A DNA stretch of 64,000 bases, taken from assembly GCA_002269645.1 (NCBI GenBank), contig NIVC01001028.1, positions 1 through 64,000 on the forward strand, in the 5' to 3' direction. The translations under genes were made by a program, and so were the position numbers. This DNA is from Macrostomum lignano (taxonomy: Eukaryota). Numbering within the stretch: the first letter of the stretch is position 1; every line of letters begins with the position of its first letter. Under the pieces are notes generated by a model. It was not told the DNA's origin and made no database searches. It saw only the letters and a list, made by a program, of their open reading frames with translations. Shown here one piece after another: positions 4,189-55,321 of this stretch.

Positions 4189-5892
4189 TCAGTTTAGTTG
4201 TTTAGCGCGCCTCATGCAACTCGCACGCAGAATCACGTCGTGCAGCAGCTCAAACAGCTCCAGCACAGTCAGCAGAGAGCAGCCCAAATACAATCCGAGA
4301 GCGCTGCCGATGTCAGCGATAAACTGGGACAGATTGTAGTCAAGACTGAATGTTGTCAGAGAGCTCATTGTCGCATCCGCTCGAAGCGTGACGCTCACTG
4401 CGGCTCGCGAAAAATAACGCGACACTCCCTCCTCGAAACCAAGCCTGTCAGAAGCATCCATAAATTTCATAATCTTGACACCAGTTTCCAAAGACCTATA
4501 ATCCGTTGGATCCACAGTCGCTATCATAGATCCTAACAGGTTTTTCACTAGGCGAATCAGGCTGCCCTGGTTCGGCCACAATCCGTACGATGACGTCACA
4601 TCGTACAGCCGCTGATTGCACAGTCGCTTCTCTGAGCACGCTTTGTCCCACGAGCTGTTTGCGCTGTCAGCGTCTTCTCGAGCTCTCAGAAACGCATTCA
4701 TATTTCGGTGGATGGTGTCCATCGATGCCGCTGCAGTGAGGTTGAGACACAAGGCCAAGTGTCTGAACTCCCATGGTGTCGGGTCCGGTGAAGGACTGCA
4801 GTTGTACATCTGCTGTCTGCTCCTGGCGATCTCCGAGTAGTAGCAGTGGGCCTCGCTGTAGCTAAACGCGTCGGCAGAACCGGTGCGCGGGTTGAGGAAC
4901 AACACTGGCTCGTCGTGCTGTGAGACACACTTGCCAGGGAAGTCCGACGGCTTCATGAGAACATCTCGCATCGCGATCGAGATATCATAGGCTCTTCCAG
5001 GACCAAGGCTGACCACAGTCGACGTGAGTCGTGAAGGATACTGACCTCTGGGAGTAAGGTAGAGGTACATTCCGCTGCCTTTATCGAATCCGATTGGGTT
5101 CTCGAGGTCCCAGTCATACGGATATACATTTACTGACTTTCCTGAAACAATTGTAGTCATGTTCGGGAGGCGCTGATCAGGTGGTGAGAACAAACTTTTT
5201 TCGTCAAAGTCGCGAAAGTATGAATCCAAGTGTAAATTAAGCTTGAGTCTGCTGTTTGTGTTTTGCATTTTGAGCAACTCAGCGTCGGTCAAGGCCAGCT
5301 TAAAGCACTTCAGGTGGTTCGGGTGGTACAAGGTCTCGACCGCAATCGGCTTGTCGAGTGTTGGCTCAGAGCCTGCACTGAATATGCCGAAGTTCATGTA
5401 GAAAGTCTGCAGCTTCCGCTGACCGACGATGTCAGCGAGAACTTTGTACGGGAGCGACTGGATCAAGCTTGTTGGCCGAAGCTCGTCCAGTGCGACGGTA
5501 ATGTGGGCCGATGAGTTCAGGGAGTTGAGCGCATCTTGGAATGAGGCATTTGCAGCGTAGAATGGAGTTTTCACCTGGTCAGCTTCGGACTTGTTCAAGC
5601 GACACGTGAAGGATCCAGCTGTTTGCAGACTGTTGCAAAAGTACACGTCGGGAAACTCGAACGGAACCTTTTCGGCTTCGAACTCGGACTTGACGCCCGG
5701 ACTGTTGAGCTTCCCAATGTAGACGATGCAGGTGTTGAGTAGCAGGCCAAGAAAGGATAAAAAAGTGAGCAGCCAGAAAACCCGAAGAGCGACGGGTCGA
5801 CTCGCAGGAGCCACTCGGCCGATAGCGTGAGCGGTGGTGTTGGCCACGGAGTCCCGGACAATCTCTGACAGAGGCAGGCGCTGAGAAACCAT
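4189..5892 (-). CDS. DEG/ENaC (amiloride-sensitive/ASIC superfamily) channel subunit, intronless, copy A, 567 aa
   Basis: Pre-TM1 TTAHA, TM1 VFWLLTFLSFLGLLL, FPDVYFCN, Cys-rich thumb region, WP motif, TM2 IADIGSALGLYLGCSLLTVLELFE containing GxS filter. Confidence 0.93.
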   Translation of the reverse strand: MVSQRLPLSEIVRDSVANTTAHAIGRVAPASRPVALRVFWLLTFLSFLGLLLNTCIVYIGKLNSPGVKSEFEAEKVPFEFPDVYFCNSLQTAGSFTCRLNKSEADQVKTPFYAANASFQDALNSLNSSAHITVALDELRPTSLIQSLPYKVLADIVGQRKLQTFYMNFGIFSAGSEPTLDKPIAVETLYHPNHLKCFKLALTDAELLKMQNTNSRLKLNLHLDSYFRDFDEKSLFSPPDQRLPNMTTIVSGKSVNVYPYDWDLENPIGFDKGSGMYLYLTPRGQYPSRLTSTVVSLGPGRAYDISIAMRDVLMKPSDFPGKCVSQHDEPVLFLNPRTGSADAFSYSEAHCYYSEIARSRQQMYNCSPSPDPTPWEFRHLALCLNLTAAASMDTIHRNMNAFLRAREDADSANSSWDKACSEKRLCNQRLYDVTSSYGLWPNQGSLIRLVKNLLGSMIATVDPTDYRSLETGVKIMKFMDASDRLGFEEGVSRYFSRAAVSVTLRADATMSSLTTFSLDYNLSQFIADIGSALGLYLGCSLLTVLELFELLHDVILRASCMRRAKQLN

Positions 5893-10353: not shown

Positions 10354-12060
10354 TCATTTTAGCGTATTGTCCGCGCGCCTCAAGCAACTCGCACGCAGAA
10401 TCACGTCGTGCAGCAGCTCAAACAGCTCCAGCACAGTCAGCAGAGAGCAGCCCAAATACAATCCGAGAGCGCTGCCGATGTCAGCGATAAACTGGGACAG
10501 ATTGTAGTCAAGACTGAATGTTGTCAGAGAGCTCATTGTCGCATCCGCTCGAAGCGTGACGCTCACTGCGGCTCGCGAAAAATAACGCGATACTCCCTCC
10601 TCGAAACCAAGCCTGTCAGAAGCATCCATAAATTTCATAATCTTGACACCAGTTTCCAAAGACCTATAATCCGTTGGATCCACAGTCGCTATCAGAGATC
10701 CTAACAGGTTTTCCACTAGACGAATCAGGCTGCCCTGGTTCGGCCACAATCCGTACGATGACGTCACATCGTACAGCCGCTGATTGCACAGTCGCTTCTC
10801 TGAGCACGCTTTGTCCCATGAGCTGTTTGCGCTGTCAGCGTCTTCTCGAGCTCTCAGAAACGCATTCATATTTCGGTGGATGGTGTCCATCGATGCCGCT
10901 GCAGTGAGGTTGAGACACAAGGCCAAGTGTCTGAACTCCCATGGTGTCGGGTCCGGTGAAGGACTGCAGTTGTACATCTGCTGTCTGCTCCTGGCGATCT
11001 CCGAGTAGTAGCAGTGGGCCTCGCTGTAGCTAAACGCGTCGGCAGAACCGGTGCGCGGGTTGAGGAACAACACTGGCTCGTCGTGCTGTGAGACACACTT
11101 GCCAGGGAAGTCCGACGGCTTCATGAGAACATCTCGCATCGCGATCGAGATATCATAGGCTCTTCCAGGACCAAGGCTGACCACAGTCGACGTGAGTCGC
11201 GAAGGATACTGACCTCTGGGAGTAAGGTAGAGGTACATTCCGCTGCCTTTATCGAATCCGATTGGGTTCTCCAGGTCCCAGTCATACGGATATACATTTA
11301 CTGACTTTCCTGAAACAATTGTAGTCATGTTCGGGAGTCGCTGATCAGGTGGTGAGAACAAACTATTTTCGTCAAAGTCGCGAAAGTATGGATCCAAGTG
11401 TAAATTAAGCTTGAGTCTGCTGTTTGTGTTTTGCATTTTGAGCAACTCAGCGTCGGTCAAGGCCAGCTTAAAGCACTTCAGGTGATTCGGGTGGTACAAG
11501 GTCTCGACCGCAATCGGCTTGTCGAGTGTTGGCTCAGAGCCTGCACTGAATATGCCGAAGTTCATGTAGAAAGTCTGCAGCTTCCGCTGACCGACGATGT
11601 CAGCGAGAACTTTGTACGGGAGCGACTGGATCAAGCTTGTTGGCCGAAGCTCGTCCAGTGCGACGGTAATGTTGGCCGATGAGTTCAGGGAGTTGAGCGC
11701 ATCTTGGAATGAGGCATTTGCAGCGTAGAATGGAGTTTTCACCTGGTCAGCTTCGGACTTGTTCAAGCGACACGTGAAGGATCCAGCTGTTTGCAGACTG
11801 TTGCAAAAGTACACGTCGGGAAACTCGAACGGAACCTTTTCGGCTTCGAACTCGGACTTGACGCCCGGACTGTTGAGCTTCCCAATGTAGACGATGCAGG
11901 TGTTGAGTAGCAGGCCAAGAAAGGATAAAAAAGTGAGCAGCCAGAAAACCCGAAGAGCGACGGGTCGACTCGCAGGAGCCACTCGGCCGATAGCGTGAGC
12001 GGTGGTGTTAGCCACGGAGTCCCGGACAATCTCTGACAGAGGCTGTAGTTTTGAAACCAT
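10354..12060 (-). CDS. DEG/ENaC channel subunit, intronless, copy B, 568 aa
   Basis: Same motifs as copy A; 6 internal amino-acid differences plus divergent extreme termini. Confidence 0.93.
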   Translation of the reverse strand: MVSKLQPLSEIVRDSVANTTAHAIGRVAPASRPVALRVFWLLTFLSFLGLLLNTCIVYIGKLNSPGVKSEFEAEKVPFEFPDVYFCNSLQTAGSFTCRLNKSEADQVKTPFYAANASFQDALNSLNSSANITVALDELRPTSLIQSLPYKVLADIVGQRKLQTFYMNFGIFSAGSEPTLDKPIAVETLYHPNHLKCFKLALTDAELLKMQNTNSRLKLNLHLDPYFRDFDENSLFSPPDQRLPNMTTIVSGKSVNVYPYDWDLENPIGFDKGSGMYLYLTPRGQYPSRLTSTVVSLGPGRAYDISIAMRDVLMKPSDFPGKCVSQHDEPVLFLNPRTGSADAFSYSEAHCYYSEIARSRQQMYNCSPSPDPTPWEFRHLALCLNLTAAASMDTIHRNMNAFLRAREDADSANSSWDKACSEKRLCNQRLYDVTSSYGLWPNQGSLIRLVENLLGSLIATVDPTDYRSLETGVKIMKFMDASDRLGFEEGVSRYFSRAAVSVTLRADATMSSLTTFSLDYNLSQFIADIGSALGLYLGCSLLTVLELFELLHDVILRASCLRRADNTLK

Positions 12061-19976: not shown

Positions 19977-21730
19977 CGAGGGATGTTCCATAAGTACTTA
20001 TACTTTTGCATGCTGCTCAGGAACTACGCAACCAATCATTGTAAGTTTTATGTCGCTGGAAAGCGGCTTTACTCATCTTTAATCTGTCGCCAAAATCATT
20101 TCGTTCTGTCAACTATGTCAAAAGTTACAACAAAAAACGTAGTCAAAGGTCACCCATAGACTTACAAGAAATTTAAAGAGCAACAACTACAATGGCAAGC
20201 ATGAAAACAGAGGCGCGTTGTTGATGACAGAAAGTTTGACTTCTTTGTCACTCATCCTCAGTCGGTACCGACACCTTCTCAACGTAGTTTCCACCGGAGT
20301 TGATGCACTTGGTCCACCTGTTAAACATGCTTTTGATGGCTTCTGCGTACAGCTGTCGGGGGATGACATACAGCAGAATTCTGCGGACTTCCTCCTCGAT
20401 CTGGTTCCTGGTCTCGTACACGCGTCCTTTCAGATGGCGCTTCAACTCTGGAAATAAAGCAAAGTCTGCTGGTGCCAGGTCTGGAGAGTAAGGAGGGTGA
20501 GGTAGAAGATGGAGCTTCAGCTTGCTGATTGCCTCGACTGTCTTTTGTGCTGTATGAGGCCTTGCATTGTCATGATGAAGAATGAAAGGTCTGGGATTTT
20601 CACGACGCTTGTTCTGGATGTCATGATGCAGCTTTGTTAGCGTTTCAACGTAGCGCTCAGAGTTTATTGTAGTGTTTGGCTCCAAAAACTCGACAGTTAG
20701 AGGACCATTGCAGTCGAAAAACAGAGACAGCATGATCTTCTTTCCATGTGCGTCCCTTTGAGCTTTTACCGGAGGATCAGAGCCCTTCAGCATCCAGACC
20801 TGGGAATCACGTTTCGTTGGTGGATCAAAATGGGGAATCCAGGTTTCATCTCCAGTGACTATCATTCGATGGAAGAGATCCCAACCACCGTATTCTTCCA
20901 TCATCCGAATATTGGCCTGACAAATCTGCTGCCTCTGCAGTCTCAAGTCCGAGGTGAGTAGGCGTGGCACCCAACGAGCAGTCAGCTTGACAAAGTCCAT
21001 GCGCGACAAGCAGCGATGCACAGTTGTGCTCGGCGTGTCCAGTCTATCTGCAATCTGTCGAATCGTTAGCCGACAATCTTCGTCCAGCAGATCAAGAATT
21101 CGATCGGTGAGAGCATCAGAGCCTGATGTGCAGGGGCGGCCCGACCTCGGCAAATCAGCAACATTGGTCCTTCCTGCTTCGAACTGCTCAACCCAGTTGT
21201 AGACGGTCATCCTGCTCACCGCATTAGCTCCATGAATGTTGCATAAATCCGCATAAATCTCTGATCGCTTTTTTCCGAGTTTCCAGAGGGTAAAAATTGC
21301 AGCGCGCTGTCCTTCCCTTGAGTTCACATCCATGGTGATGCAGCAGCAGCCAAGGTGGTGAAACTTTACAAGATTAAGATGCTGTGATCTTAAGATTAAG
21401 ATGCTGTGAAAGCTTAGGCCAGTATTTTCCATAGACGAAAAGGGTGTGGCATTCGCTTATGAAGCAAAAAAGAATGCATTATGTAGAATCCGAAATAACT
21501 CTGCGTGCTGAACTTTGAAGTTTTGATTTTGAAAATTTCTTGTAAGTCTATGGGTGACCTTTGACTACGTTTTTTGTTGTAACTTTTGACATAGTTGACA
21601 GAACGAAATGATTTTGGCGACAGATTAAAGATGAGTAAAGCCGCTTTCCAGCGACATAAAACTTACAATGATTGGTTGCGTAGTTCCTGAGCAGCATGCA
21701 AAAGTATAAGTACTTATGGAACATCCCTCG
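19977..21730 (-). mobile_element. Full-length mariner transposon, 1754 bp, 198-bp TIRs, TA target duplication
   Basis: TIRs 19977-20174 and 21533-21730 start CGAGGGATGTTCC and show no mismatch that I could find; TA on both sides; lies in SCAF8 intron 1. Confidence 0.97.
20248..21333 (-). CDS. Mariner DD34D transposase, 361 aa from MDVNSREGQR
   Basis: HTH N-terminus, WVPRLL, IVTGDETW, HHDNARPH, YSPDLAPADF with 34 residues between second and third Asp; no stop or frameshift. Confidence 0.95.
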   Translation of the reverse strand: MDVNSREGQRAAIFTLWKLGKKRSEIYADLCNIHGANAVSRMTVYNWVEQFEAGRTNVADLPRSGRPCTSGSDALTDRILDLLDEDCRLTIRQIADRLDTPSTTVHRCLSRMDFVKLTARWVPRLLTSDLRLQRQQICQANIRMMEEYGGWDLFHRMIVTGDETWIPHFDPPTKRDSQVWMLKGSDPPVKAQRDAHGKKIMLSLFFDCNGPLTVEFLEPNTTINSERYVETLTKLHHDIQNKRRENPRPFILHHDNARPHTAQKTVEAISKLKLHLLPHPPYSPDLAPADFALFPELKRHLKGRVYETRNQIEEEVRRILLYVIPRQLYAEAIKSMFNRWTKCINSGGNYVEKVSVPTEDE

Positions 21731-24588: not shown

Positions 24589-25050
24589 ATGGCTGTTCCA
24601 TGGGCCTCTGAAACTGAGGGATTTTCTGAAACTGAATGCTATTCCATGGGCCTCTGAAACTGATGGCTGTTCCATGGGCCTTTAAAACTGAGGGCTGTTC
24701 CATGGGCCTCTGAAACTGAGGGCTGTTCCATGGTCCTCTGAAACTGAGGGCTGTTCCATGGTCCTCTGAAACTGAGGGCTGTTCCATGGGCCTCTGAAAC
24801 TGAGGGCTGTTCCATGGTCCTCTGAAACTGAGGGCTGTTCCATGGGCCTTTGAAACTGAGGGCTGTTCCATGGTCCTCTGAAACTGAGGACTGTTCCATG
24901 GGCCTCTGAAACTGAGGGCTGTTCCATGGTCCTCTGAAACTGAGGGCTGTTCCATGGTCCTCTGAAACTGAGGGCTGTTCCATGGTCCTCTGAAACTGAG
25001 GGCTGTTCCATGGTCCTCTGAAATTCCGAGGGCTGTTCCATGGTCCTCTA
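24589..25050. repeat. 28-bp minisatellite in SCAF8 intron 2
   Basis: Unit GGGCTGTTCCATGGTCCTCTGAAACTGA, ~16 copies. Confidence 0.95.
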
Positions 25051-25632: not shown

Positions 25633-26055
25633 ACTGCATCTAGAGCTCCATAACTATAGAGCTGCATCTAGAGCTACATATCTATAGATAGCCACATCTA
25701 GAGCTGCATCTAGAGCTACATATCTATAGATAGCCACATCTAGAGCTGCATCTAGAGCTACATATCTATAGATAGCCGCATCTAGAGCTCCATATCTATA
25801 CAGCTGCATCTAGAGCTCCATATCTATAGAGCTGCATCTAGAGTTCCATATCTATAGAGCTGCATCTAGAGTTCCATATCTATTGAGCTGCATCTAGAGC
25901 TCCATATCTATAGAGCCGCATCTAGAGCTCCATATCTATAGAGCTGCATCTAGAGTTCCATATCTATTGAGCTGCATCTAGAGCTCCATATCTATAGATA
26001 GCCGCATCTAGAGCTCAAAATCTATAGAGCTGCATTAGAGCTCCATATCCATAGA
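25633..26055. repeat. 28-bp minisatellite in SCAF8 intron 3
   Basis: Unit GAGCTGCATCTAGAGCTCCATATCTATA, ~14 degenerate copies. Confidence 0.93.
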
Positions 26056-26094
26056 GTAAGGCTAAACGTCTATTTTTAAAAATTCCTATCGCAG

Positions 26095-27244
26095 AGTCTG
26101 CAGGAAAAGATTCTTCAGCAGAGCAGCATGCTCAGCCAGCAGCAGATGATCGACCCGGAGATCCTGGCCCAGCTGCAGGTCTTGCTGAAGGAGCTAACCA
26201 AGACCGCTCGGGCTGCATTTGAACGCGACCAGGAGGCCCAACGAGCCAAGGATGTGGTAGCTTACGACTACGGAGACGAGTCGGACTCAGATGACAACAC
26301 GGGCAGCAACGGACTGCAGAGGCAGCAGAGGTCCAAATTGAATGCCGCTTATCCAGCAACCAGCGGCGGTGTTGATCAGAACTTTCTCGACCAGCTGCAA
26401 CAGATGACGGATATGCTGGAGCAGACTCGAGTGCTGCAAGAGCAGCTGCAGTCGGCTATGATGCAGCAGCAGCTGGAAGAAGCTGAGCAGCAGCAGCAGC
26501 AGCAACACGAGGAGCAGTTCTACCAGCAGCAGCAGACAGCTCGGCAGCGGCTGTCCTACGAAGAAGGCGAAATTGACGAAGAGGCGTTAGCCAAAGCAGC
26601 TGTGCCTGCTGCTTCCTCTATTAATAAGCTTAGCAACTATAATGACTTCGGTATTGATAACAGTGCGCCCGAGGGCAGCGCGGCAGTAGAAGAGACCGGA
26701 GCCGATCGCAGTCGTCACGGGCACAGTCACGGACACAGTCATCACAGCACCCGCCATCCAGCGAGATCTCCAGCAACAGCAACAACATCGTCTAGACGAC
26801 GTCGCCGAAGTCACAGCGGCGGCGGTCGCGGCGAGAGCTCTGAGCGTCGCAGAAAAGAGCGCAAGCGTAAATCGTTGCCCCGGTTACGCAATGGTCGCCT
26901 ATCGATTGTTAGCGCCACCATTTTTATTGGCAAATTGCAAAAATCCACCACGGAGGCTCGGCTCCGCTCTTTGCTAGAGGAATACGGACAAGTGCAAGCG
27001 CTTGTGCTCATCTCTTCCCGCGGCTGCGGATTTGTAGTCTATTCCAAGCGAAAGCACGCGGCCAAGGCTATTGATAAGCTGCGAAGCACTCGTCTGGACG
27101 GCGCCAGCCTGCGAGTCGCTTGGGCGCCAAATAAAGGCATTAAAGACTCCGAATTGAAAGAGTACTGGGACGAAGAGGAGGGCTGCACTTATATACCGTA
27201 CGAAACGTTTCCTAGGGACCAGTCTTGGCGCGAACTGCTGCAAG
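26095..27244 (+). CDS. SCAF8: SCAF4/SCAF8 exon 4 (Gln-rich, Arg/Ser-rich, RRM)
   Basis: RRM SATIFIGKL...RGCGFV...LRVAWAPNKGIK...YWDEEEGCTYIPYE; donor CAAG|GTGAGT. Confidence 0.93.
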
Positions 27245-27364
27245 GTGAGTACAATTGATATTTTAGTTCGTAATAAAGTGATGTCATTAAGATCAGGACC
27301 CGTCAAGACCGCCGAACATGAAAAAATTTTGAATCCTAATTTTTAGCTCAACACTTTAACAGTG

Positions 27365-28022
27365 TTGTCTTGTCTTGTCTATGGCAATAAATTATCGCTT
27401 AAGTCTTGTCTATGGCAATAAATTAGCGCTACAGTCTTGTCTATGGCACTAAATTAACGCTAAAGTCTTGTCTATGGCACTAAATTAACGCTAAAGCCTT
27501 GTCTATGGCACTAAATTAGCGCTTAAGTCTTGTCTATGGCACTAAATTAGCGCTTAAGTCTTGTCTATGGCACTAAATTAGCGCTACAGTCTTGTCTATG
27601 GCACTAAATTAGCGCTACAGTCTTGTCTATGGCACTAAATTAGCGCTACAGTCTGGTCTATGGCACTAAATTAGCGCTACAGTCTTGTCTATGGCACTAA
27701 ATTAGCGCTACAGTCTTGTCTATGGCACTAAATTAGCGCTACAGTCTTGTCTATGGCACTAAATTAGCGCTACAGTCTTGTCTATGGCACTAAATTAGCG
27801 TTAAAGTCTTGTCTATGGCACTAAATTAGCGCTACAGTCTTGTCTATGGCACTAAATTAGCGCTAAAGTCTTGTCTATGGCACTAAATTAGCGCTACAGT
27901 CTTGTCTATAGCACTAAATTAACGCTACAGTCTTGTCTATGGCACTAAATTAGCGCTACAGTCTTGTCTATGGCACTAAATTAGCGCTAAAGTCTTGTCT
28001 ATGGTACTGAATTAGTGCTAAA
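27365..28022. repeat. 31-bp minisatellite in SCAF8 intron 4
   Basis: Unit AGTCTTGTCTATGGCACTAAATTAGCGCTAC, ~20 copies. Confidence 0.95.
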
Positions 28023-30477: not shown

Positions 30478-31797
30478 GGCCCTCTGTAGCTGGTGCCCCC
30501 TTCTGTAACTGGCGCCCCTCTGTAGCTGGCGCCCCCTTCTGTAACTGGCGCCCCTCTGTAGCTGGCGCCCCCTTCTGTAACTGGCGCCCCTCTGTAGCTG
30601 GTGCCCCCTTCTGTAACTGGCGCCCCTCTGTAGCTGGTGCCCCCTTCTGTAACTGGCGCCCCTCTGTAGCTGGTGCCCCCTTCTGTAACTGGCGCCCTCT
30701 GTAGCTGGTGCCCCCTTCTGTAACTGGCGCCCCTCTGTAGCTGGTGCCCCCTTCTGTAGCTGGTGCCCCCTTCTGTAGCTGGTGCCCCCTTCTGTAGCTG
30801 GTGCCCCCTTCTGTAGCTGGTGCCCCCTTCTGTAGCTGGTGCCCCCTTCTGTAGCTGGTGCCCCCTGTAGCTGGTGCCCCCTTCTGTAGCTGGTGCCCCC
30901 TGTAGCTGGTGCCCCCTTCTGTAACTGGCGCCCTCTGTAGCTGGTGCCCCCTTCTGTAACTGGCGCCCCTCTGTAGCTGGTGCCCCCTTCTGTAACTGGC
31001 GCCCTCTGTAGCTGGTGCCCCCTTCTGTAACTGGCGCCCCTCTGTAGCTGGTGCCCCCTTCTGTAGCTGGTGCCCCCTTCTGTAGCTGGTGCCCCCTTCT
31101 GTAGCTGGTGCCCCCTTCTGTAGCTGGTGCCCCCTTCTGTAGCTGGTGCCCCCTTCTGTAGCTGGTGCCCCCTTCTGTAGCTGGTGCCCCCTTCTGTAGC
31201 TGGTGCCCCCTTCTGTAGCTGGTGCCCCCTGTAGCTGGTGCCCCCTTCTGTAGCTGGCGCCCCCTTCTGTAACTGGCGCCCTCTGTAGCTGGCGCCCCCT
31301 TCTGTAACTGGCGCCCCTCTGTAGCTGGCGCCCCTCTGTAGCTGGTGCCCCCTTCTGTAACTGGCGCCCCTCTGTAGCTGGTGCCCCCTTCTGTAACTGG
31401 CGCCCCTCTGTGGCTGGTGCCCCTTCTGTAACTGGCGCCCCTCTGTAGCTGGTGCCCCCTTCTGTAACTGGCGCCCCTCTGTAGCTGGCGCCCTCCAGTG
31501 TAGCTGGCGCCCCCCTCTGTAGCTGGCGCCCTCCAGTGTAGCTGGCGCCCTCTGTAGCTGGTGCCCTCTGTAGCTGGTGCCCTCTGTAGCTGGTGCCCCC
31601 TTCTGTAGCTGGTGCCCCCTTCTGTAACTGGCGCCATCTGTAGCTGGCGCTCTCCAGTGTAGCTGGCGCCACCCTCTGTAGCTGGCGCCCTCCAGTGTAG
31701 CTGGCGCCCTCCAGTGTAGCTGGCGCCCTCCTCTGTAGCTGGTGCCCCCTTCTGTAACTGGTGCCCCTCTCTGTCGCTGGCGCTCCTCTGTAGCTGG
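30478..31797. repeat. C-rich minisatellite of 17/19-bp units with a 36-bp higher-order repeat
   Basis: TGTAGCTGGTGCCCCCTTC and TGTAACTGGCGCCCCTC alternate, then occur in runs. Confidence 0.95.
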
Positions 31798-38658: not shown

Positions 38659-39014
38659 TCTTTTATTAGAGACAGGGGCTGTGTGCACCCTGGCGCACTT
38701 TAAGTGACATTGTCACACAAATTTTTTCAAGTCATGCGACAAAATTGAAATTACATTTATTTCTATGAAATTGAATTTTTGCTGCATCTCTAGCTTTTCT
38801 ATCTAGCGTCGATGACGAATCTGAAATTACCAACTAGAGGCCCTGAATGAAATAATAGTTAAATGGTTTAAAAAAATAACTTAGTATTCGATAATATGGT
38901 TTTCCGTGTACATGTAATTATAATATTGGTAGCAGCTAATTATTGCATTGTATTTGACTCAATCGACAGCGCCAGTGGTTGATATCGATAACACAAGTCG
39001 CGTTCGTTCAAAGG

Positions 39015-42000
39015 ATGCAAGGCGCCCAGCTTCTCGTTTTCGCGCTGGCACTCAGCGCCTGCCCGATGGCAAATGCCGAAGGCTTGGGCACCAAAGTGGC
39101 CAAAAAAGCGTGGGACATTGTTCAAAACAAGCTGAACCCAAAGAGCAAGGCCGAGATGTACCAGAAAGCTGTGGACATTGTGTCGGACCACATCACCAAG
39201 TCTGCCAACAAAGCTGAGAAGCTAGCTAGTAGCTACATGTCGGCTGTGGACAAAGACCCCGGTGCTCTCATCACCAGGGAGAGCATGAAGAAGATCATAA
39301 GTGGCAGCTCATTCCTGCCGCAGAAGGCCGGCACAAGAACGGTGTCTCTGCAGTCGGATCAAGGATTCAACGGTTTCACCAACTACCAGCCATCGGGTTG
39401 GAAGATCACCGAAACAATGAGTGGTCCTACAGATAAGAAAGAGGAGCCTTCAGAGACCAAGGAGCCCGTTTACACTTACCCGATGGGCCTCGGCCCCGTT
39501 CTGCTCAACCAGTGCACGGAGAAGAACTACGACAAGACCAGCCCGTGCTACAACAGCAAGTTGTTCGACCTGCAAATCACGATCTGCTTGAATCAGATCG
39601 ACGCAGCCAACTATATCGGGGTGGGCTTCAACGGCAGAGGCTACTACAATGCGCAGAGTAGAAGAGCCAGCCTGGTTCAAAGAAGCTGCTCAAACCGAGC
39701 AACCTTCATGGGATCCGACATTCCCGACACTATGAACATATTCGGCATTTTTGAAACATTCGCCGAGACTAAGTCGTTCCAGTCAGCCGATGAGTATATG
39801 CAATACATCAGACATAAGGCTGGATTGTCCAACCAAAAGAACTTGTTCGCGAGCGAGGCCAGCAAATACGGCAAGGCCAGCGGAATCGGCTTTGATCTTG
39901 GAGGCGTTGGCGCTGCAGCGGGAGCTTTGATCGGCGCCAAGGCCGGCGGTCCAGCGGGAGCCGAAATGGGCGCGGGTCTGGGCGGGGCTATTGGTGGCAC
40001 CATCAATGGAGGCAGCGGATCTGGGTCAGGAAACGCAAAGCAGAGCGAACGGAGCAACAGTTCGTCTGCAACCAGTCACTTCGAAGCTTCAGACAAATTT
40101 CAAAAGGCCTCGAATAATTTCTTCGCGATTATGTATGTCAACGTTATTCTGTACGAGATCAGCTTGGATGAGGTGAAGCCAACAGATCTCAGTCTAGCCC
40201 TGCTTAAGGATTACATGAGCCTGCCAGTGTCCTATTTCTCCATCGGTGCTGACGTCAAGTACCAGAACTTCCTGCTGCGTTGGGGCACGCACTTCATCCG
40301 TTCAGGAAAGTTCGGAGGCCAACTGAAGATTACGAAGAGAGCGAGATCGGATAAGGTTCAGTCAGCTCAGCAGTTTGCCAGCATTGCAGAGACCGAGTTT
40401 CAATCCATGTTTGCCACTCTGCAGTCAAAATACTCGCAGAAGGAGAGCGGAATTGCTATATTCTTCATCAACACGAAGAGCAAGGAGGTTACGCAGAACA
40501 GCCAAGCCAAGGCAGGGTCTGAATACTCGAGCTCTATGAGGCAGACACAGAGCCAATCGCGTCAATTTCAGCAATCTGAGTTTACCCAGACAACCGTGGA
40601 GGCTCAAGGTGGAACTCCCGAGATTGCAGAAGCTCTCGTTGACTTTTACACCCCTGCGTTCAAGCAGATTTACCACGATTGGCTGGCGTCCATTAAGGAC
40701 TACGCTAAGCCGTTCGAGTTCCAGTTGAAAGCCATTGACGTGCTGTTTAACATGAACATGAACGACCTGTTTCCGGCTGGCAACATTGACTTCGGCTGCG
40801 TCAAGGATGGAGGCGGCAAAGCAAATATTCTCATCGAGCCCAAGACGAAACTTCGCTACTATATAGATGTTCAAACTCAGTTTTCCAACTCTACTAAGAT
40901 TGAGGTAAAGAAAAAGGTCTATTGCAAGTACTCTAAGCTGGACGACTTCAAGACAGATCTCGACAGGCGCAGAATCTCTTTGGAGAGGGCCATCGGGGTG
41001 TACATGGCAGAGGGGCCGTTTCCAACATCGACTTTCGAACTCAAAGGCGGTGAGCCAGGGTGCGAAGAGGCCACGCTTGGAGCACTGAGAGCGGCCAATA
41101 AGGGCAAGTCGGCTGTGCTCAAGTTCTCGGAGATGAAAAAGTACCCATTTCTTGTTACATTCGATTTACCAGAGGCAATCCCGGGCCTCATTCCGAAGCA
41201 GTCAAAGTTCAGACTCATCTACAGATCAGGCATGTGGTTTGCGACTGAGCCCACACAAACGACCATGCATCTGTACGATGGCTGCGAGATTCCAGAGTCC
41301 AAAGAGGCAAAGATCTGCTTCAGGAATATTATCATGACTTACAATGAAGCGTCTGGATTTCTGCGCGTTGATGCGAAAGATTTCCGTGCGACGAAAGCCA
41401 GGATACCAGCTTTGCCAATCTGGCTGGCAAATTCCGTTGTTGCCAGGGTGCAAAAGCTTGAAATTTCTGCAACCGCTAAGAACGATATGTATGGCGGCCG
41501 GGGTGCGGTTCCCTGCAACATCAAGTGGGTGAACTCGCATCGTCTTGACCCGCAGAAGGAAGAAAACTGCATTCACTTCACTGCCGCCACCTCAGGTGAC
41601 ATATTCGTCATACTTTCAGCCATTCCAAGGGACCATTCTACCTGGTACTACCTGCAGATCAATCCCGAAGGTGTTTCGTTTTACCAGGCGATGGAATTAA
41701 AACGAAGGGACACTCAGAAAGGAATGGGAATCCTTGGCGATAGCAACCTCTTTCAATCATTCTTCGTCTGTGTCGTGCAGAAGAAGGACAGAGTAACGAT
41801 GCAGTACGGAAAGGCAGATCCCGTGAGCGAGGTCGGCACCGTGTATTCGGGTTATACATTTGCACCCGACAGCCAATTCAGCCGTTTGTCATTTTATACA
41901 TTCGGGTCCGGTCGCAAGCCTGTGTCATTAATGGACATCCGTCTAACCCGAATGTTGCCCCAGGTGAAATGTTTGAGCAAAAACTACATCAATGTAGACG

Positions 42001-43533
42001 GGCACTGCGTTCTCGCGTGCCATTCGGAGTGCGATCAGTGCGATGTAGCCAGAGACAACAAGTCGTGCCGCCGGTGCAAGCACGTGCGAGTGGAGACTGG
42101 CAGCGGAAAGTTGAAAGTGACGGAGTGTTTCGCAAAATGTCCGCCTGGAACCACCTTGAAATCGTCTAAGACTGCGACTAAGAAGACTAAGGCTAAGCCG
42201 ACTGGTCTGTGCGAGAAGTGTCCGGCAGGAACCTTCAAGAGTGGCGACGGAAACCAAAAATGCAGTCCGTGTCCCAAAGGAAAAATAAGCGACGCTGGAG
42301 CCAAAAGCTGCGTAGCCTGTGAAGCCGGAACCTTCAACGACAAGCTTGGCCAGTCGAAATGCCAGCGCTGCGCACTCGGAACCTATTCAAGCGACGGTGC
42401 GGTGAGCTGCACAAAATGCCCTGTCGGGCACTATTCCGATAGTTTAGGCCAATCATCCTGCTTGCCATGCTCTTTTGGCAGCTTTGGGAAAGTCACTGGC
42501 CTGGCAAAGTGCACCCCCTGTTCGAAAGGATATTTCGCAGACAAAAAAGGTCAAACAATTTGCTCAAAGTGTCCGGCCGGGACGTCCAGTGCCAAGGGCT
42601 CGATGACTTGCAATAACAGTTGCACGAAAGGCAAATTTAGCCCTCGAAAGGGTGAGCCGTGCAGGCCGTGTCCTCCAGGCACGTACGGCGACAGTGTGGG
42701 CTCTTCCGCTTGTTCGAAGTGCAAAAAAGGCACCTACCAGTCAAATTCGGGTCGAACTTCGTGCATTTCAGCACCGATTGGTCACTTCGTGTCGAAGGAG
42801 GGGGCCACTAAACCGTCTAAATGCGCAGCAGGATCATTTACCGCTAAAACAGGAAGCATAAAATGCCGCCCGTGCTCTCCTGGAAGCTATGCGTCATCCA
42901 CCGGCTCGACCGCTTGTAAAAAATGCTCGCGCGGCTACTTCCAGCCTTCGACAGGCCAATCGAGTTGCAAAAAAGCGAGATACCATCATTATGTTAATCA
43001 GGAAGGAGCGGTGAAGGACACGCCTTGCTCTGCCGGGTACACGGCTGCTTCCGACCGCAGATCTTGCCACAAGTGCCGTCCAGGTACCTATGGCTCGGGA
43101 ACAGGTCTTGGTTGCACAGGTTGCTCATGGGGTTCCTACTCAGGAAAATATGGAAGTTTGAGCTGCACCCCATGCCCAAAAGGCTATTATCAACCTAATC
43201 ATTATGCAACTTCATGCATTCCCGCTCGGCGAGGCTATTACATCAACCGTGTGGAATCAACATCTCCTGGCTCCCAATGCGCCCCTGGCTACTATTCTGA
43301 TAAGCCGGGTCAGGCTTACTGCAAGCCTTGCCCTGCTGGACAAAGGAGTGAGAAAACACGCGGATCGACCTCGTGCCGGTATTGCGGACCTGGTACTTAT
43401 TCATCTAAGTCTGGCAGCACCCAGTGCAAAAAATGTCCATCGTCTGATTATGTCACTAATGCGGCCCGCTCTGCGTGTCACAAGTGTCCAGCCGGTTCTA
43501 TCGCGCTGAGCCAGGACAGGAGAAAGTGTTTTA
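39015..43533 (+). CDS. Secreted MACPF multidomain protein exon 1; model join(39015-43533,43631-43900,44904-45172), 1685 aa
   Basis: Signal peptide MQGAQLLVFALALSACPMANA; MACPF signature WGTHF-IRSGKF-GG at 40281-40319, IGVGFN, VEAQGG, WLASIKDYAKPFEFQL; FAMeT-like domain ~41510-41910; furin-like repeat ~42005-42150; ~26 CxxCxxGxY/F units; donor A|GTGAGC. Confidence 0.9.
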
Positions 43534-43630
43534 GTGAGCTTTTTTACTTCATTCTGATTCGAAGTTAGTCAAGGCCCTATAAAGTTCAATATACTTATTA
43601 TTCTAAATATATAAATACCAAAACTTTCAG

Positions 43631-43900
43631 AGTTCGGCGAGTGCTACTATCCTGGTAAAGACTTTGTTAGCACAAAGGTAAACCGTGCTTATGCTGGGCC
43701 GTGCCAGTCTTGGAGCGTGAAGAGCTGCTCCAAATACACCGAAGGAGTAAGTTGTCATACGCCAAACAAAAGGGTGCGTGAGGCTCAAGCAACGGGCAAC
43801 ACGTGTCGAATTATCGCCAAAGAAGGCGAAAAGAAGCCATGGTGTTACACAAAAACAGCTACGAAATGGTCTCACTGCTCGATTCCTAGATGCGGAAAAA
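43631..43900 (+). CDS. MACPF protein exon 2: kringle 1
   Basis: TTTCAG| phase 1; ECYYPG..GPCQSW..CH..NTCRII..KPWCYT..WSHCSIPRC; donor A|GTGAGT. Confidence 0.88.
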
Positions 43901-44252
43901 GTGAGTTGCTTGAATATTGATTACTCTGCAGGCTAATTATAGAGGAAAAACAACAGCAAGGCGTGTTCCGCAATGTTCTATTATGCGTGACTAATAAAAA
44001 CCCACTGTCTGGATTTTTATGATGTTAAGGTTTGTAGTTTAGAATTGATTCAATTTTAATATTTAGCAATGATGATTGAAATTTATTGCACTAAACGGAA
44101 CCTATGCCGAAATTGTGTGAGAATTAAGTGCTTTGGGAAGCTCGCACCTTGTTTGTTGTTTGAAAAAGTAAAAACTATATGAGCCTAAATGGTAGCACAA
44201 CAATTGCCCGAGACACCATTTTCTGCAATGCGTAGGGAATGAGCGTAAGACT

Positions 44253-44838
44253 CTATGATGAACTCTGTGGTAAACTCTATGGTAAACTCTATGGTAAACT
44301 CTATGGTAAACTCTATGGTAAACTCTATGGTAAACTCTATGATGGTAAACTCTATGGTAAACTCTATGGTAAACTCTATGGTAAACTCTATGGTAAACTC
44401 TATGGTAAACTCTATGGTAAACTCTATGATGGTAAACTCTATGGTAAACTCTATGGTAAACTCTATGGTAAACTCTATGGTAAACTCTATGGTAAACTCT
44501 ATGGTAAACTCTATGGTAAACTCTATGGTAAACTCTATGGTAAACTCTATGGTAAACTGTATGTTAAACTGTATGGTGAACTCTATGGTAAACTCTTTGG
44601 TAAACTGTATGGTGAACTCTATGGTAAACTCTTTGGTAAACTGTATGGTGAACTCTATGGTAAACTCTTTGGTAAACTGTAAGGCGAACTCTATGATGAA
44701 CTCTTATGGTAAACTCTTATGGTAAACAATGGTAAACTCTATGGTAAAATGTATGGTAAACTCTATGGTAAACCTTATGGTAAACTGTATTGTAAACTGT
44801 ACGGTAAACTCTATGGTAAATTATGGAAAACTCTATGC
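44253..44838. repeat. 12-bp minisatellite in MACPF gene intron 2
   Basis: Unit ATGGTAAACTCT, degenerating toward the acceptor. Confidence 0.95.
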
Positions 44839-44903
44839 TAGATTCGTTCTCATAAGTGTTTTTGCAAACTACCACCGTGGATTCATGCGCTATAATATTA
44901 CAG

Positions 44904-45172
44904 AACTGAAGGAGTGCTACAGACTTGGCAGCACAGATTACGTCTCGGGCATCAGCGTGACGGAGAGTGGCAAGACCTGTCAGTCATGGGAGATTCGCAC
45001 CTGCCCATCTGGCACCAGCGGCAAAACCTGCCACGAGCCTAGCAGCGCAGTGAAGCGTGCTAAAAAGATTGGCAACACCTGTCGGATTGTTCCCGGCGAT
45101 TCAGCCAAAAAGCCGTGGTGTTATACTACTACGAGTAAGAAGTGGGAGTATTGCAAAATTCCGCAATGCTGA
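44904..45172 (+). CDS. MACPF protein exon 3: kringle 2 and stop
   Basis: TTACAG| phase 1; ECYRLG..DY..TESGKTCQSW..CH..NTCRI..KPWCYTT..WEYCKIPQC*. Confidence 0.9.
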
Positions 45173-45619
45173 ATGATTAACCTTTACTGGAGACGGTTTA
45201 TAGTTGACGACTCAAAAATCATAAAAACTGGAAATTTTCTCTTTTGGCTTTTTAGTTTCCTCTATTTATTTCGTAATTTTACCGGGTTTATTTACGAGCG
45301 TTGTTTTTTTTCAAAGGTATTTTCATATTTAATGCTTTGCTGCCAATTCCCATAAGTTTTCCCCCTTAATAAACTGCGACGCTTACGCTTGTCTAATATT
45401 CCTTTTGACTCGTCTCTAGACTGCGGTTTGAGGGTAATTTTTCGTTGCAATATATATTAATGCAAAACAATAAAATTGAGCTTTTTAATGCCTTAGATCA
45501 TTTCTTCTATTATAAATACGCGGAGACCTATGATGGGTACATGTACTTAGATGCAATAAAGAATTGGTTTACGCTTCATGTTTCATGCAGTTAGCTAATA
45601 TCCAAGTCTAGCTACGTGA

Positions 45620-46810
45620 CGCTTGAGATTTGCCAGCAAATGCATTTTTCCTGCAGCGCATTTGGCAGCTACATTCTGTCTGCATTGCCTCCCAAATGCT
45701 TAAGTAAGTCCTGATAAAGAGATTTAGCCGATCAAAACGTTTTGATAGTAACTGCATATCCAATTCATATTTTTGTAGGTATTCAGTTCTAATACATGCA
45801 GGAGTACATCGGTGAGCTATTAATTCATGCATATGCCGTGGCGCTTTGTCGCCAAAATCTCTTTATTAAGACTTACGCGGTACTAGCATTAGAGGGGGGT
45901 TGCAATGCAGACAGAATCTGCTGCTGCGTGGCTAAATGCTCTGCAGAAAAAAGCATTGCGGGCAAATCTCGGCGGGCAATTCGTCTGCGGACAATTCTCG
46001 TGCTGGGATAACGACGTTTGCCTGCGCGACGTTTGCCTGCGGGACGTTTGCCTGCGGGACGTTTGCCTGCGGGACGTTTGCCTGCGGGACGTTTGCCTGC
46101 GGGACGTTTGCCTGCGGGACGTTTGCCTGCGGGACGTTTGCCTGCGGGACGTTTGCCTGCGGGACGTTTGCCTGCGGGACGTTTGCCTGCGGGACGTTTG
46201 CCTGCGGGACGTTTGCCTGCGGGACGTTTGCCTGCGGGACGTTTGCCTGCGGGACGTTTGCCTGCGGGACGTTTGCCTGCGGGACGTTTGCCTGCGGGAC
46301 GTTTGCCTGCGGGACGTTTGCCTGCGGGACGTTTGCCTGCGGGACGTTTGCCTGCGGGACGTTTGCCTGCGGGACGTTTGCCTGCGGGACGTTTGCCTGC
46401 GCGACGTTTGCCTGCGGGACGTTTGCCTGCGCGACGTTTGCCTGCGGGACGTTTGCCTGCGGGACGTTTGCCTGCGGGACGTTTGCCTGCGGGACGTTTG
46501 CCTGCGGGACGTTTGCCTGCGGGACGTTTGCCTGCGGGACGTTTGCCTGCGGGACGTTTGCCTGCGGGACGTTTGCCTGCGGGACGTTTGCCTGCGGGAC
46601 GTTTGCCTGCGAGACGTTTGCCAGCCGACGTTTGCCAGCCGACGTTTGCCAGCCGACGTTTGCCAGCCGACGTTTGCCAGCCGACGTTTGCCAGCCGACG
46701 TTTGCCAGCCGACGTTTGCCAGCCGACGTTTGCCAGCCGACGTTTGCCAGCCGACGTTTGCCAGCCGACGTTTGCCAGCCGACGTTTGCCAGCCGACGTT
46801 TGCCAGCCAA
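45620..46810. mobile_element. Foldback element whose outer 15-bp unit is amplified into a satellite
   Basis: Inverted arms 45620-45725 and 45855-45975, homologous to 9110-9600; then ~40 x GACGTTTGCCTGCGG (46013-46612) and ~14 x CGACGTTTGCCAGC. Confidence 0.75.
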
Positions 46811-54725: not shown

Positions 54726-55050
54726 GTTATCGTGGAATTTTCCAGGAATATTCCAGGCCAAATTATCGTGGAATTTTCCAGGAATATTCCAAGCCAAATT
54801 ACGAGTATCATGGAATTTTCCAGGCCAAATTATCATGGAATTTTCCTGGCCAAATTATCATGGAATATTCCAGGCCAAATTATCATGGAATATTCCAGGC
54901 CAAATTATCATGGAATATTCCAGGCCAAATTATCATGGAATATTCCAGGCCAAATTATCATGGAATATTCAAGGCCAAATTATCATGGAATTTTCCAGGC
55001 CAAATTATCGTGGAATTTTCCAGATCAAATTATTACGGAATTTTCCAGGC
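54726..55050. repeat. 25-bp minisatellite in STOML1 intron 4
   Basis: Unit CCAGGCCAAATTATCATGGAATATT. Confidence 0.93.
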
Positions 55051-55321
55051 TAATTTATCGTATAATTTTATCTTCCAAAAATATTACTGGCCATAATACT
55101 ATGGAATTCCCCAGGGAATATTATACTGCTTTAGGATATTATCTCAGGGTTTATGACGTAATTTATTGGAAATATTCCAGACCTAATTATCGCGAAATGA
55201 ATGATGGAACGTTTCGCCACTATAAGTATTAAAAACACATTATTATGATCGTATTCTCGAACTCCCAGGTATCAATGGTTTCCCAACTAATTTAGAATGA
55301 TTTAGCATTCGTCTCTCTTAC

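Follow-up and report, generated by a model that had tools for sequence, protein, structure and literature searches.

A kringle-ended MACPF protein of Macrostomum lignano and its uncharacterised invertebrate family with a shared core and variable tails

We analysed a stretch of 64,000 nucleotides (nt) from the flatworm Macrostomum lignano (assembly GCA_002269645.1, contig NIVC01001028.1, positions 1 to 64,000 of the forward strand), called the window below. Positions 39015-45172 of the forward (+) strand hold a real, intact three-exon gene, Mlig027585.g1, which encodes a secreted perforin-like (MACPF) protein of 1685 amino acids (aa). Sequence comparison places this protein in an old invertebrate MACPF family whose members share a core of ~950 residues, carry swapped tail modules and are uncharacterised. 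As we define it from the sequences, the core consists of N-terminal amphipathic helices, a MACPF domain, an alpha/beta middle domain, a lectin-type (Methyltransf_FA-like) sandwich and a furin-like Cys module; only the kringle tail is lineage-specific here, and we consider the family more interesting than the kringles. An earlier reading of the window from its letters alone (the sequence-only reading) had proposed a new MACPF architecture. In the literature on MACPF proteins and on Macrostomum we found no paper on this protein or its family and no characterised family with this architecture, and none of the three results that the sequence-only reading had named as refuting it was obtained. Its observations hold in all structural points and its interpretation holds in part. 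The design is not unique, as the core is shared by several phyla.

The gene and its family

The family became visible through an exhaustive HMMER search, in which aa 1-1010 were compared with 1.84 billion representatives. With thresholds of E<=1e-3, 1e-10 and 1e-30 this search matched 371, 173 and 63 proteins, respectively. In many of these relatives one continuous match, beginning at about aa 55-65 and ending at aa 1009, shows 37-41% identity (single-stretch phmmer matches span, for example, aa 65-1009 and 55-1008). A second, word-indexed search with the core alignment gave only the same 11 proteins. Across nine relatives from five phyla the core (aa ~100-1045) is colinear, with 32-41% identity over 870-1030 aligned residues. 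Members include proteins of the amphioxus species Branchiostoma floridae, B. belcheri and B. lanceolatum, the hemichordate Glandiceps, the brachiopod Lingula, the annelid Owenia, the coral Oculina, and Nematostella; Branchiostoma has multiple distinct paralogues. In the databases these relatives are labelled as uncharacterised or as "MACPF domain-containing".

What follows the furin-like module differs from member to member. We found tails made of CUB plus discoidin, of three pentraxins plus EGF, and of five hevein-type chitin-binding domains, and further tail modules in relatives include C-type lectin, SRCR, SUEL lectin, HYR, Sushi and FN2. A further set of 29 representatives contains Ephrin_rec_like in 12 members, SRCR in six, discoidin in five and kringle in none. 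Kringle ends are seen in two Macrostomum paralogue groups only, and at least three other Macrostomum paralogues (P0003-P0005) end in a different module, which we read as discoidin-like from its sequence. The uncharacterised relatives (e.g. XP_035696659.1, C3YB58, XP_013392189.1 and XP_032240239.2) thus share with the Macrostomum protein the same Cys pattern, helix, MACPF domain, middle domain, sandwich and furin-like module; they differ in their lectin, SRCR, discoidin, CUB, pentraxin, chitin-binding, Sushi or HYR tails in place of kringles, in a mostly present xKR/A site (a slash marks a cleavage or splice point here and below) and in a shorter candidate segment for the first transmembrane hairpin (TMH1).

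The gene itself is easily read from the window. An uninterrupted open reading frame (ORF) of 1529 codons runs from 38979 to 43568, and two short ORFs downstream of it are kringle-like sequence. Exons 39015-43533, 43631-43900 and 44904-45172 join into a coding sequence of 5058 nt with a single stop at its end, starting with ATG at 39015 and closing with the TGA that ends at 45172. Exon 1 (39015-43533; 4.5 kb) encodes aa 1-1506 plus base 1 of codon 1507, i.e. the signal peptide, N-terminal helices, MACPF domain, middle domain, beta-sandwich, furin-like module and Cys-rich stalk, and has its donor, A/GTGAGC, after 43533. Intron 1 (43534-43630) has 97 nt, lies in phase 1 and reads GTGAGC...TTTCAG (TTTCAG/AG before 43631). 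Exon 2 (43631-43900) is kringle 1 (Cys1511-Cys1594; a Pfam Kringle match), with the donor A/GTGAGT after 43900. Intron 2 (43901-44903; 1003 nt, phase 1, GTGAGT...ATTACAG, with ATTACAG/AA before 44904) contains a 12-bp minisatellite (GTAAACTCTATG x49) at 44245-44837. Exon 3 (44904-45172) is kringle 2 (Cys1601-Cys1685; 40.9 bits for Pfam Kringle by itself) and the TGA stop, and a candidate polyadenylation signal, AATAAA, likely from its sequence, follows at 45368-45373, ~195 nt 3' of the stop. The coordinates and the 1685-aa product reconstructed in the sequence-only reading are therefore exact, with canonical GT..AG junctions and phase-1 introns in both places.

The 1685-aa product is letter-for-letter identical to PAA73168.1 / UniProt A0A267FHC7 ("hypothetical protein BOX15_Mlig027585g1", Macrostomum lignano), so the protein is not new as had been supposed; its exact sequence was already in GenBank and UniProt. 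The annotation of PAA73168.1 comes from a genome-guided RNA-seq transcriptome of M. lignano (PMC5730564), and because the deposited model is RNA-seq-derived, the splicing of the kringle exons to exon 1 has backing at the transcript level (PMC5730564). The same join is conserved in a paralogue, PAA55510.1 (P0002; Mlig022132.g2), which is encoded on another contig (locus L001) and is 68% identical to the Mlig027585.g1 product. Its gene likewise has three exons, phase-1 introns at matching positions and two whole kringles. Between the two genes synonymous sites are saturated, with proportions of synonymous differences (pS) of 0.69-0.83, and proportions of nonsynonymous differences (pN) are 0.12 in the sandwich (the most conserved part), 0.16 in the MACPF domain, 0.21 in the middle domain and 0.40 in the stalk. 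For the kringle exons we obtained pN 0.32 / pS 0.83 (kringle 1) and pN 0.27 / pS 0.69 (kringle 2). By this comparison every part is under purifying selection, both kringle exons included, and has therefore long been maintained as coding sequence.

Three differing models of Mlig027585 or near-identical copies are found in the databases, with 1685, 1296 and 1281 aa. The older UniProt model of 1296 aa (A0A1I8J970; P0001) lacks aa 1130-1329, 1357-1506 and 1546-1599. We rejected this model, which places introns within the repeat-coding exon and cuts one kringle to half, and it is best read as a product of mis-predicted introns in that exon. The 1281-aa model, PAA49111.1 (P0168), breaks off at aa 1281 and differs by 22 substitutions, and probably represents a second, truncated copy, the genome being partly duplicated. 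A further M. lignano entry, P0035 (UniProt A0A1I8JDZ1; 1383 aa), is labelled 'RNase H domain-containing' and is 57% identical to core aa 721-1009; it is probably a chimeric gene model in which a retroelement is fused to a fragment of a MACPF-family paralogue.

One could argue from the older model that our gene structure is the artefact, i.e. that the kringle exons belong to another transcript or that the long exon is interrupted by introns as in A0A1I8J970. The three blocks deleted in that model of the same gene, together with a consensus-like GTAAGT inside kringle exon 2 (at ~43748), speak for this view. Against it, the 1685-aa product is an RNA-seq-guided GenBank model, the deleted blocks are an ORF under purifying selection, the half kringle left by the short model cannot fold as a kringle, and the P0002 gene shows this three-exon layout with its phase-1 introns too and encodes two whole kringles. 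We regard an artefact as highly improbable.

Domains of the core and the tail

At the level of the fold, the MACPF domain covers aa ~101-590 (39315-40784). Searching Pfam with the whole product gave a PF01823 match to aa 349-581 (58.8 bits versus a cut-off of 21.5, E 1.1e-15). The MACPF signature W-G-T-H-F-x6-G-G (WGTHFIRSGKFGG) can be read at aa 423-435 (40281-40319), and in a 10-sequence core alignment G424, T425, H426, G434 and G435 are invariant and W423 nearly so. Compared with PDB sequences, the family profile found C8alpha (E 3e-4), C9, GNIP1Aa and perforin, aligned across the signature. A structure model of aa 95-1010 built from a 108-sequence alignment reached a predicted local distance difference test score (pLDDT) of 77.6 and a predicted template modelling score (pTM) of 0.77; its low-confidence stretches are aa 95-146, 289-364, 471-508 and 818-827. 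(A first model, from a 10-sequence alignment, had a pLDDT of 45.8 and was discarded.) Foldseek matched the model to perforin (5.9e-13), GNIP1Aa, Mpf2Ba1, MPEG1, C6, C8, C9, TgPLP1 and pleurotolysin B in the PDB, all with probability 1.0. The canonical MACPF domain named from the letters alone is thus borne out by Pfam, the signature, the family profile and the structure model, in which the MACPF/CDC fold (a bent central sheet with a helical cluster on either side) is recovered.

Two of the low-confidence stretches, aa 289-364 and aa 471-508, fall within the two loops between central strands that are the usual sites of TMH1 and TMH2 in MACPF proteins. Candidate TMH1 (aa ~256-367, 39780-40115; boundaries approximate) is flanked in the model by two long central strands. 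This protein and two paralogues have 112 aa in this place, against 79 aa for the amphioxus equivalent and 40 aa for that of corals. The difference includes a Gly/Ala-rich insert of ~50 aa (GIGFDLGGVGAAAGALIGAKAGGPAGAEMGAGLGGAIGG; aa ~290-339, window 39882-40031) with repeated GxxxG/AxxxG spacing, which is present here and in P0002 and P0003; P0004 and all relatives outside the flatworms lack it, TMH1 there having 40-84 aa. This insert could be a membrane-active element or merely a low-complexity expansion. Candidate TMH2 (aa ~445-524, 40347-40586) is Ser/Gln/Thr-rich and also lies between central strands, with low confidence at aa 471-508; its equivalent has 44-85 aa across the family.

With perforin-1, C6-C9 and MPEG1 the protein shares the MACPF fold and the W/Y-G-T/S-H-F/Y-x6-G-G signature, and, as in those proteins, accessory domains would place the MACPF domain on its target. 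Sequence likeness to them is however confined to the signature region (best PDB E 3e-4), and the protein has a middle domain and a sandwich of its own. C6-C9 have TSP1 and LDLRA domains flanking MACPF, neither of which was matched here (Pfam, E<=0.1). Perforin-1 consists of MACPF, an EGF-like domain and a C-terminal C2 domain, whereas our protein has no C2 match and instead carries a novel domain of 240 aa and the lectin-type sandwich. MPEG1/perforin-2 is a type-I membrane protein with MACPF, a P2/MABP domain and a transmembrane helix, in contrast to the present protein with its kringle end and no transmembrane segment.

Behind the MACPF domain lies the family-specific middle domain (aa 591-830, 40785-41504), mixed alpha/beta in the model with mostly high pLDDT and conserved in all relatives. 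It had been described as an unassigned domain of ~230 aa, and with ~240 aa it is indeed without a Pfam or PDB sequence relative, whether the single sequence or the family profile is searched. When segments were searched separately, neither the N-terminus nor the middle domain nor the sandwich had a Pfam match.

The sandwich (aa 831-985, 41505-41969) is all-beta in the model. The Foldseek matches other than MACPF proteins are legume lectins, galectins and ConA-like sandwiches (1viw_B, 1fx5, 2ymz with a target TM-score of 0.59, and 1sla); the Foldseek output carries no query ranges, so we assigned these matches to the sandwich by their length (144-196 aligned columns) and all-beta content. The model thus argues for a lectin-type beta-sandwich. 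A domain like farnesoic acid O-methyltransferase (FAMeT) had been suggested for this segment. The beta-sandwich part of that suggestion stands, with a lectin-type fold, and the FAMeT link is less firm: the sandwich of this protein has no Pfam match even at E<=10, and the family profile finds nothing among PDB sequences. Five of 22 family sandwich domains match PF12248 (Methyltransf_FA), all below threshold (best E 1.4e-4), and this is the only Pfam family matched by more than one of the 22. It is reasonable to treat the FAMeT call as a remote-homology lead suggested by these sequences, not as established membership. Methyltransf_FA is a domain of the crustacean farnesoic acid O-methyltransferase; the domain here is an all-beta sandwich whose nearest solved folds are lectins, and nothing suggests that it works as an enzyme or methyltransferase.

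The core ends with a furin-like / growth-factor-receptor-like Cys-rich module (aa 986-1050, 41970-42164). The furin-like repeat proposed earlier keeps its cysteines family-wide, although the Pfam match (GF_recep_IV, E 0.0036) is below threshold.

At its other end the protein begins with a predicted signal peptide, aa 1-21 (MQGAQLLVFALALSACPMANA before EG; 39015-39077), with a Kyte-Doolittle (KD) mean over 19 residues of 1.56 and a cleavage site placed by the AxA motif (ANA/EG). Hydropathy of the signal or transmembrane type is found only in aa 1-21. The helical, Lys-rich region that follows (aa 22-100, 39078-39314; 17% Lys, isoelectric point (pI) 9.6) starts with a cationic amphipathic helix, GLGTKVAKKAWDIVQNKL, its helices being predicted at low confidence. 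We compared window positions 39078-39140 with the N-termini of family members P0006-P0017 and P0024. Most relatives, amphioxus, annelid and coral proteins among them, have a signal peptide and a short pro-segment ending in xKR/A, and then an amphipathic helix, e.g. AVPAFVADAAKDVGAKVVDRLGDRVAEG. The Mlig027585 product is without the xKR/A site, and its predicted signal cleavage directly adjoins the equivalent helix. From this comparison, the cationic amphipathic N-terminal helix is ancestral to the family, and the dibasic site with the conserved helix suggests a processed N-terminal peptide or helix with a function of its own. The N-terminus of one amphioxus member (P0010) reads KR/FLPAIANLAGKLFGSGK and resembles frog antimicrobial peptides.

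The tail of the Macrostomum protein begins with a Cys-rich stalk (aa 1051-1505, 42165-43529) of 26 CxxCxxGxY units of ~17 aa each, lying between aa 1066 and 1505. In the Pfam search with the whole product it was matched by Ephrin_rec_like (PF07699) in 13 stretches (166 bits, E 1.4e-49), in agreement with the ~26 Cys repeats counted in the sequence-only reading. The two terminal kringles also proved correct: Kringle (PF00051) matches two stretches with 58.5 bits versus a cut-off of 34.3, and plasminogen K2-K3 can be aligned with the pair (E 1.8e-32, whole chain), the six canonical cysteines coinciding and the PWCYT motif being present. The six cysteines and PWCYT are common to the kringles of plasminogen, HGF and apolipoprotein(a), from which those of our protein differ in several ways. 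Each has eight cysteines, i.e. one pair beyond the canonical six, and both read NTCRI(I/V) where plasminogen has NYCRNPD. Where plasminogen K1 has PDNDPQGPWCY, kringle 2 has PGDSAKKPWCY and kringle 1 has AKEGEKKPWCY, so that Lys-Lys precedes PWCY. The acidic residues of the lysine pocket, which we take to be Asp55 and Asp57 in the numbering of plasminogen K1/K4, are Gly/Ser in kringle 2. Because the acidic pocket residues are replaced, a canonical lysine-binding site in these kringles seems unlikely. We also considered identity with the kringle protein of flatworm adhesion, Tmed-krg1, and rejected it: that protein is membrane-bound, with six kringles and no MACPF domain (PMC9229212).

The tail is strongly charged. 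The net charge of aa 986-1505 is +52 and the kringle pair adds +20, giving about +72 for rod and kringles together. Tails of the kringle-tailed paralogues carry +72 and +77, and those of discoidin-like-tailed paralogues +1 and +4. The mature chain has ~181 kDa and pI 9.3, with no hydrophobic 19-mer except in the signal peptide (maximum KD 1.55-1.56). As predicted from these properties, the protein is secreted, soluble and strongly basic.

Proposed function and alternatives

The protein is most likely a secreted effector that is brought to its target by a variable head. Taken as a whole, the reading that we prefer, a MACPF protein of an ancient family that serves as a recognition-guided defence, immune or feeding effector, has in our judgement a probability of about 0.5. 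The variable tail would dock the protein on a target surface, which for the kringle paralogue would probably be polyanionic (a microbial envelope, sulfated glycans or mucus). Docking would concentrate the conserved core, and the core would then oligomerise via its MACPF domain and damage or perforate the target membrane. We infer from the analogy to perforin, C9, MPEG1 and GNIP that the protein would oligomerise and enter the membrane. A role in immunity or defence is suggested because the family carries lectin, SRCR, pentraxin and chitin-binding heads and has multiple distinct paralogues in amphioxus. It seems reasonable, from the domain order, to picture recognition modules held on a rod, and the picture is strengthened because relatives carry lectin, SRCR, CUB or pentraxin modules at the same position. 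A like design logic, MACPF joined to a carbohydrate- or microbe-binding module, is known from apple-snail perivitellin-2 (PV2; MACPF plus tachylectin) and apextrin (MACPF plus ApeC). Both have other accessory domains, and no sequence relationship outside the MACPF domain was seen, although no search aimed at it was made. The Macrostomum protein differs from them in being a single chain whose core and head are separated by a long rod.

Several observations weigh against this effector reading. The TMH candidates are polar, with lengths of 40-112 and 44-85 aa across the family, and their beta-hydrophobic moment is not above that of shuffled sequences in a test run without a positive control and therefore of little weight (z ~0 here and mostly -1.1 to +1.9 in the family, only two TMH1 segments exceeding 2.5). 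Some MACPF proteins with the signature, namely astrotactin, BRINP, Torso-like and C6, are non-lytic. Strong conservation of the middle domain and sandwich could reflect a conserved partner instead of membrane attack, and the kringles appear to be without the Asp55/Asp57 lysine-binding centre. We found no functional or expression data on any family member in the literature text, and neither Mlig027585 nor Mlig022132 appears in the supplements of four M. lignano transcriptome papers. A serious though less probable alternative is that the core binds a conserved extracellular partner and the protein has a matrix, adhesion, secretory-granule or signalling role with no pore, in the manner of astrotactin, BRINP and Torso-like. 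The lack of beta-amphipathic periodicity in the polar, length-variable hairpins would fit (again with no positive control), as would the sandwich (pN 0.12) and middle domain (pN 0.21), whose conservation we take to equal or exceed that of the MACPF domain (pN 0.16). Rod-like Cys-rich repeats, like kringles, are typical features of extracellular binding proteins, and temporary adhesion in flatworms uses a six-kringle protein, but the latter is membrane-bound and unrelated beyond its kringles (PMC9229212). On the other side, the MACPF signature residues and the Gly-Gly pair are invariant, and microbe-binding-type tails (chitin-binding, lectins, SRCR, pentraxin) together with the amphioxus paralogues fit immunity better.

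It appears unlikely that the protein is a toxin for attack or defence, set free by gland cells or rhabdites to act on prey (diatoms, protists) or predators, and not an antimicrobial effector. This would be argued by analogy: the protein is secreted, large and basic, sea-anemone TX-60 toxins and the apple-snail PV2 MACPF-lectin toxin are analogues, and PV2 has the same logic of coupling a MACPF domain to a module for delivery or binding. TX-60/NveMAC proteins have ~60 kDa by published mass. Small cnidarian MACPF proteins are nematocyte toxins, but the description of the TX-60/NveMAC proteins names no more than a signal peptide and one MACPF domain, and NveMAC5-7 could not be mapped onto the Nematostella members of the MACPF-middle-sandwich family (PMC11090067). 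Amphioxus and Lingula, filter feeders without venom, moreover have family members with lectin and SRCR heads, and the protein is not known to be expressed specifically in glands.

Returning to the recognition-guided effector, a wider proposal can be put forward tentatively, and we hold it to be speculative: an ancient 'recognition-guided perforin' system, older than the cnidarian-bilaterian split, in which one killing core (MACPF, middle domain and lectin-type sandwich) would be redirected to different targets by exon-shuffled heads (lectins, SRCR, pentraxin, chitin-binding modules and kringles), functionally parallel to and independent of perforin and the complement membrane attack complex, with the kringle paralogues as a variant for polyanionic surfaces. 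Animal MACPF biology rests on few families, i.e. complement, perforin, MPEG1, astrotactin/BRINP, Torso-like, apextrin and some toxins. The present gene points to a further one, spread from cnidarians to cephalochordates, with two conserved accessory domains and a tail position that takes almost any extracellular binding module. Should its core prove lytic, the family would offer a pore former from nature that is programmable and target-directed, and a candidate for a major innate-immune effector in phyla without the terminal complement pathway; if the core is non-lytic, it would join the growing set of MACPF proteins with non-lytic extracellular functions. Direct testing is feasible, as RNA interference, in situ hybridisation and transgenesis are established in Macrostomum lignano.

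Other features of the window

Elsewhere in the window, two intronless ORFs on the reverse (-) strand, 4189-5892 and 10354-12060 (567 and 568 aa), encode DEG/ENaC proteins (amiloride-sensitive Na+ channel, PF00858). They are 98% identical and ~6.2 kb apart, and therefore point to a recent tandem duplication. A mariner/Tc1-type transposase with an intact ORF of 394 aa (20248-21432, reverse strand; Transposase_1, DDE_3 and HTH_48) is found in an AT-rich stretch (GC content 27-29% at 16-20 kb). Positions 1-2000 have 65% GC, versus 27-55% elsewhere, and contain several overlapping ORFs at 121-1636.

Long minisatellites are unusually many (24625-25049, 25634-26056, 27372-28020, 30483-31797, 44245-44837, 46013-46804 and 54806-55059), with periods of 12-36 bp and 10-73 copies, and spurious long ORFs arise from them in several frames. 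One lies just 3' of the MACPF gene (15 bp x 54, 98% matches). An RRM-domain ORF of 376 aa (26128-27258, forward strand) has 28-31-bp minisatellites on both sides.

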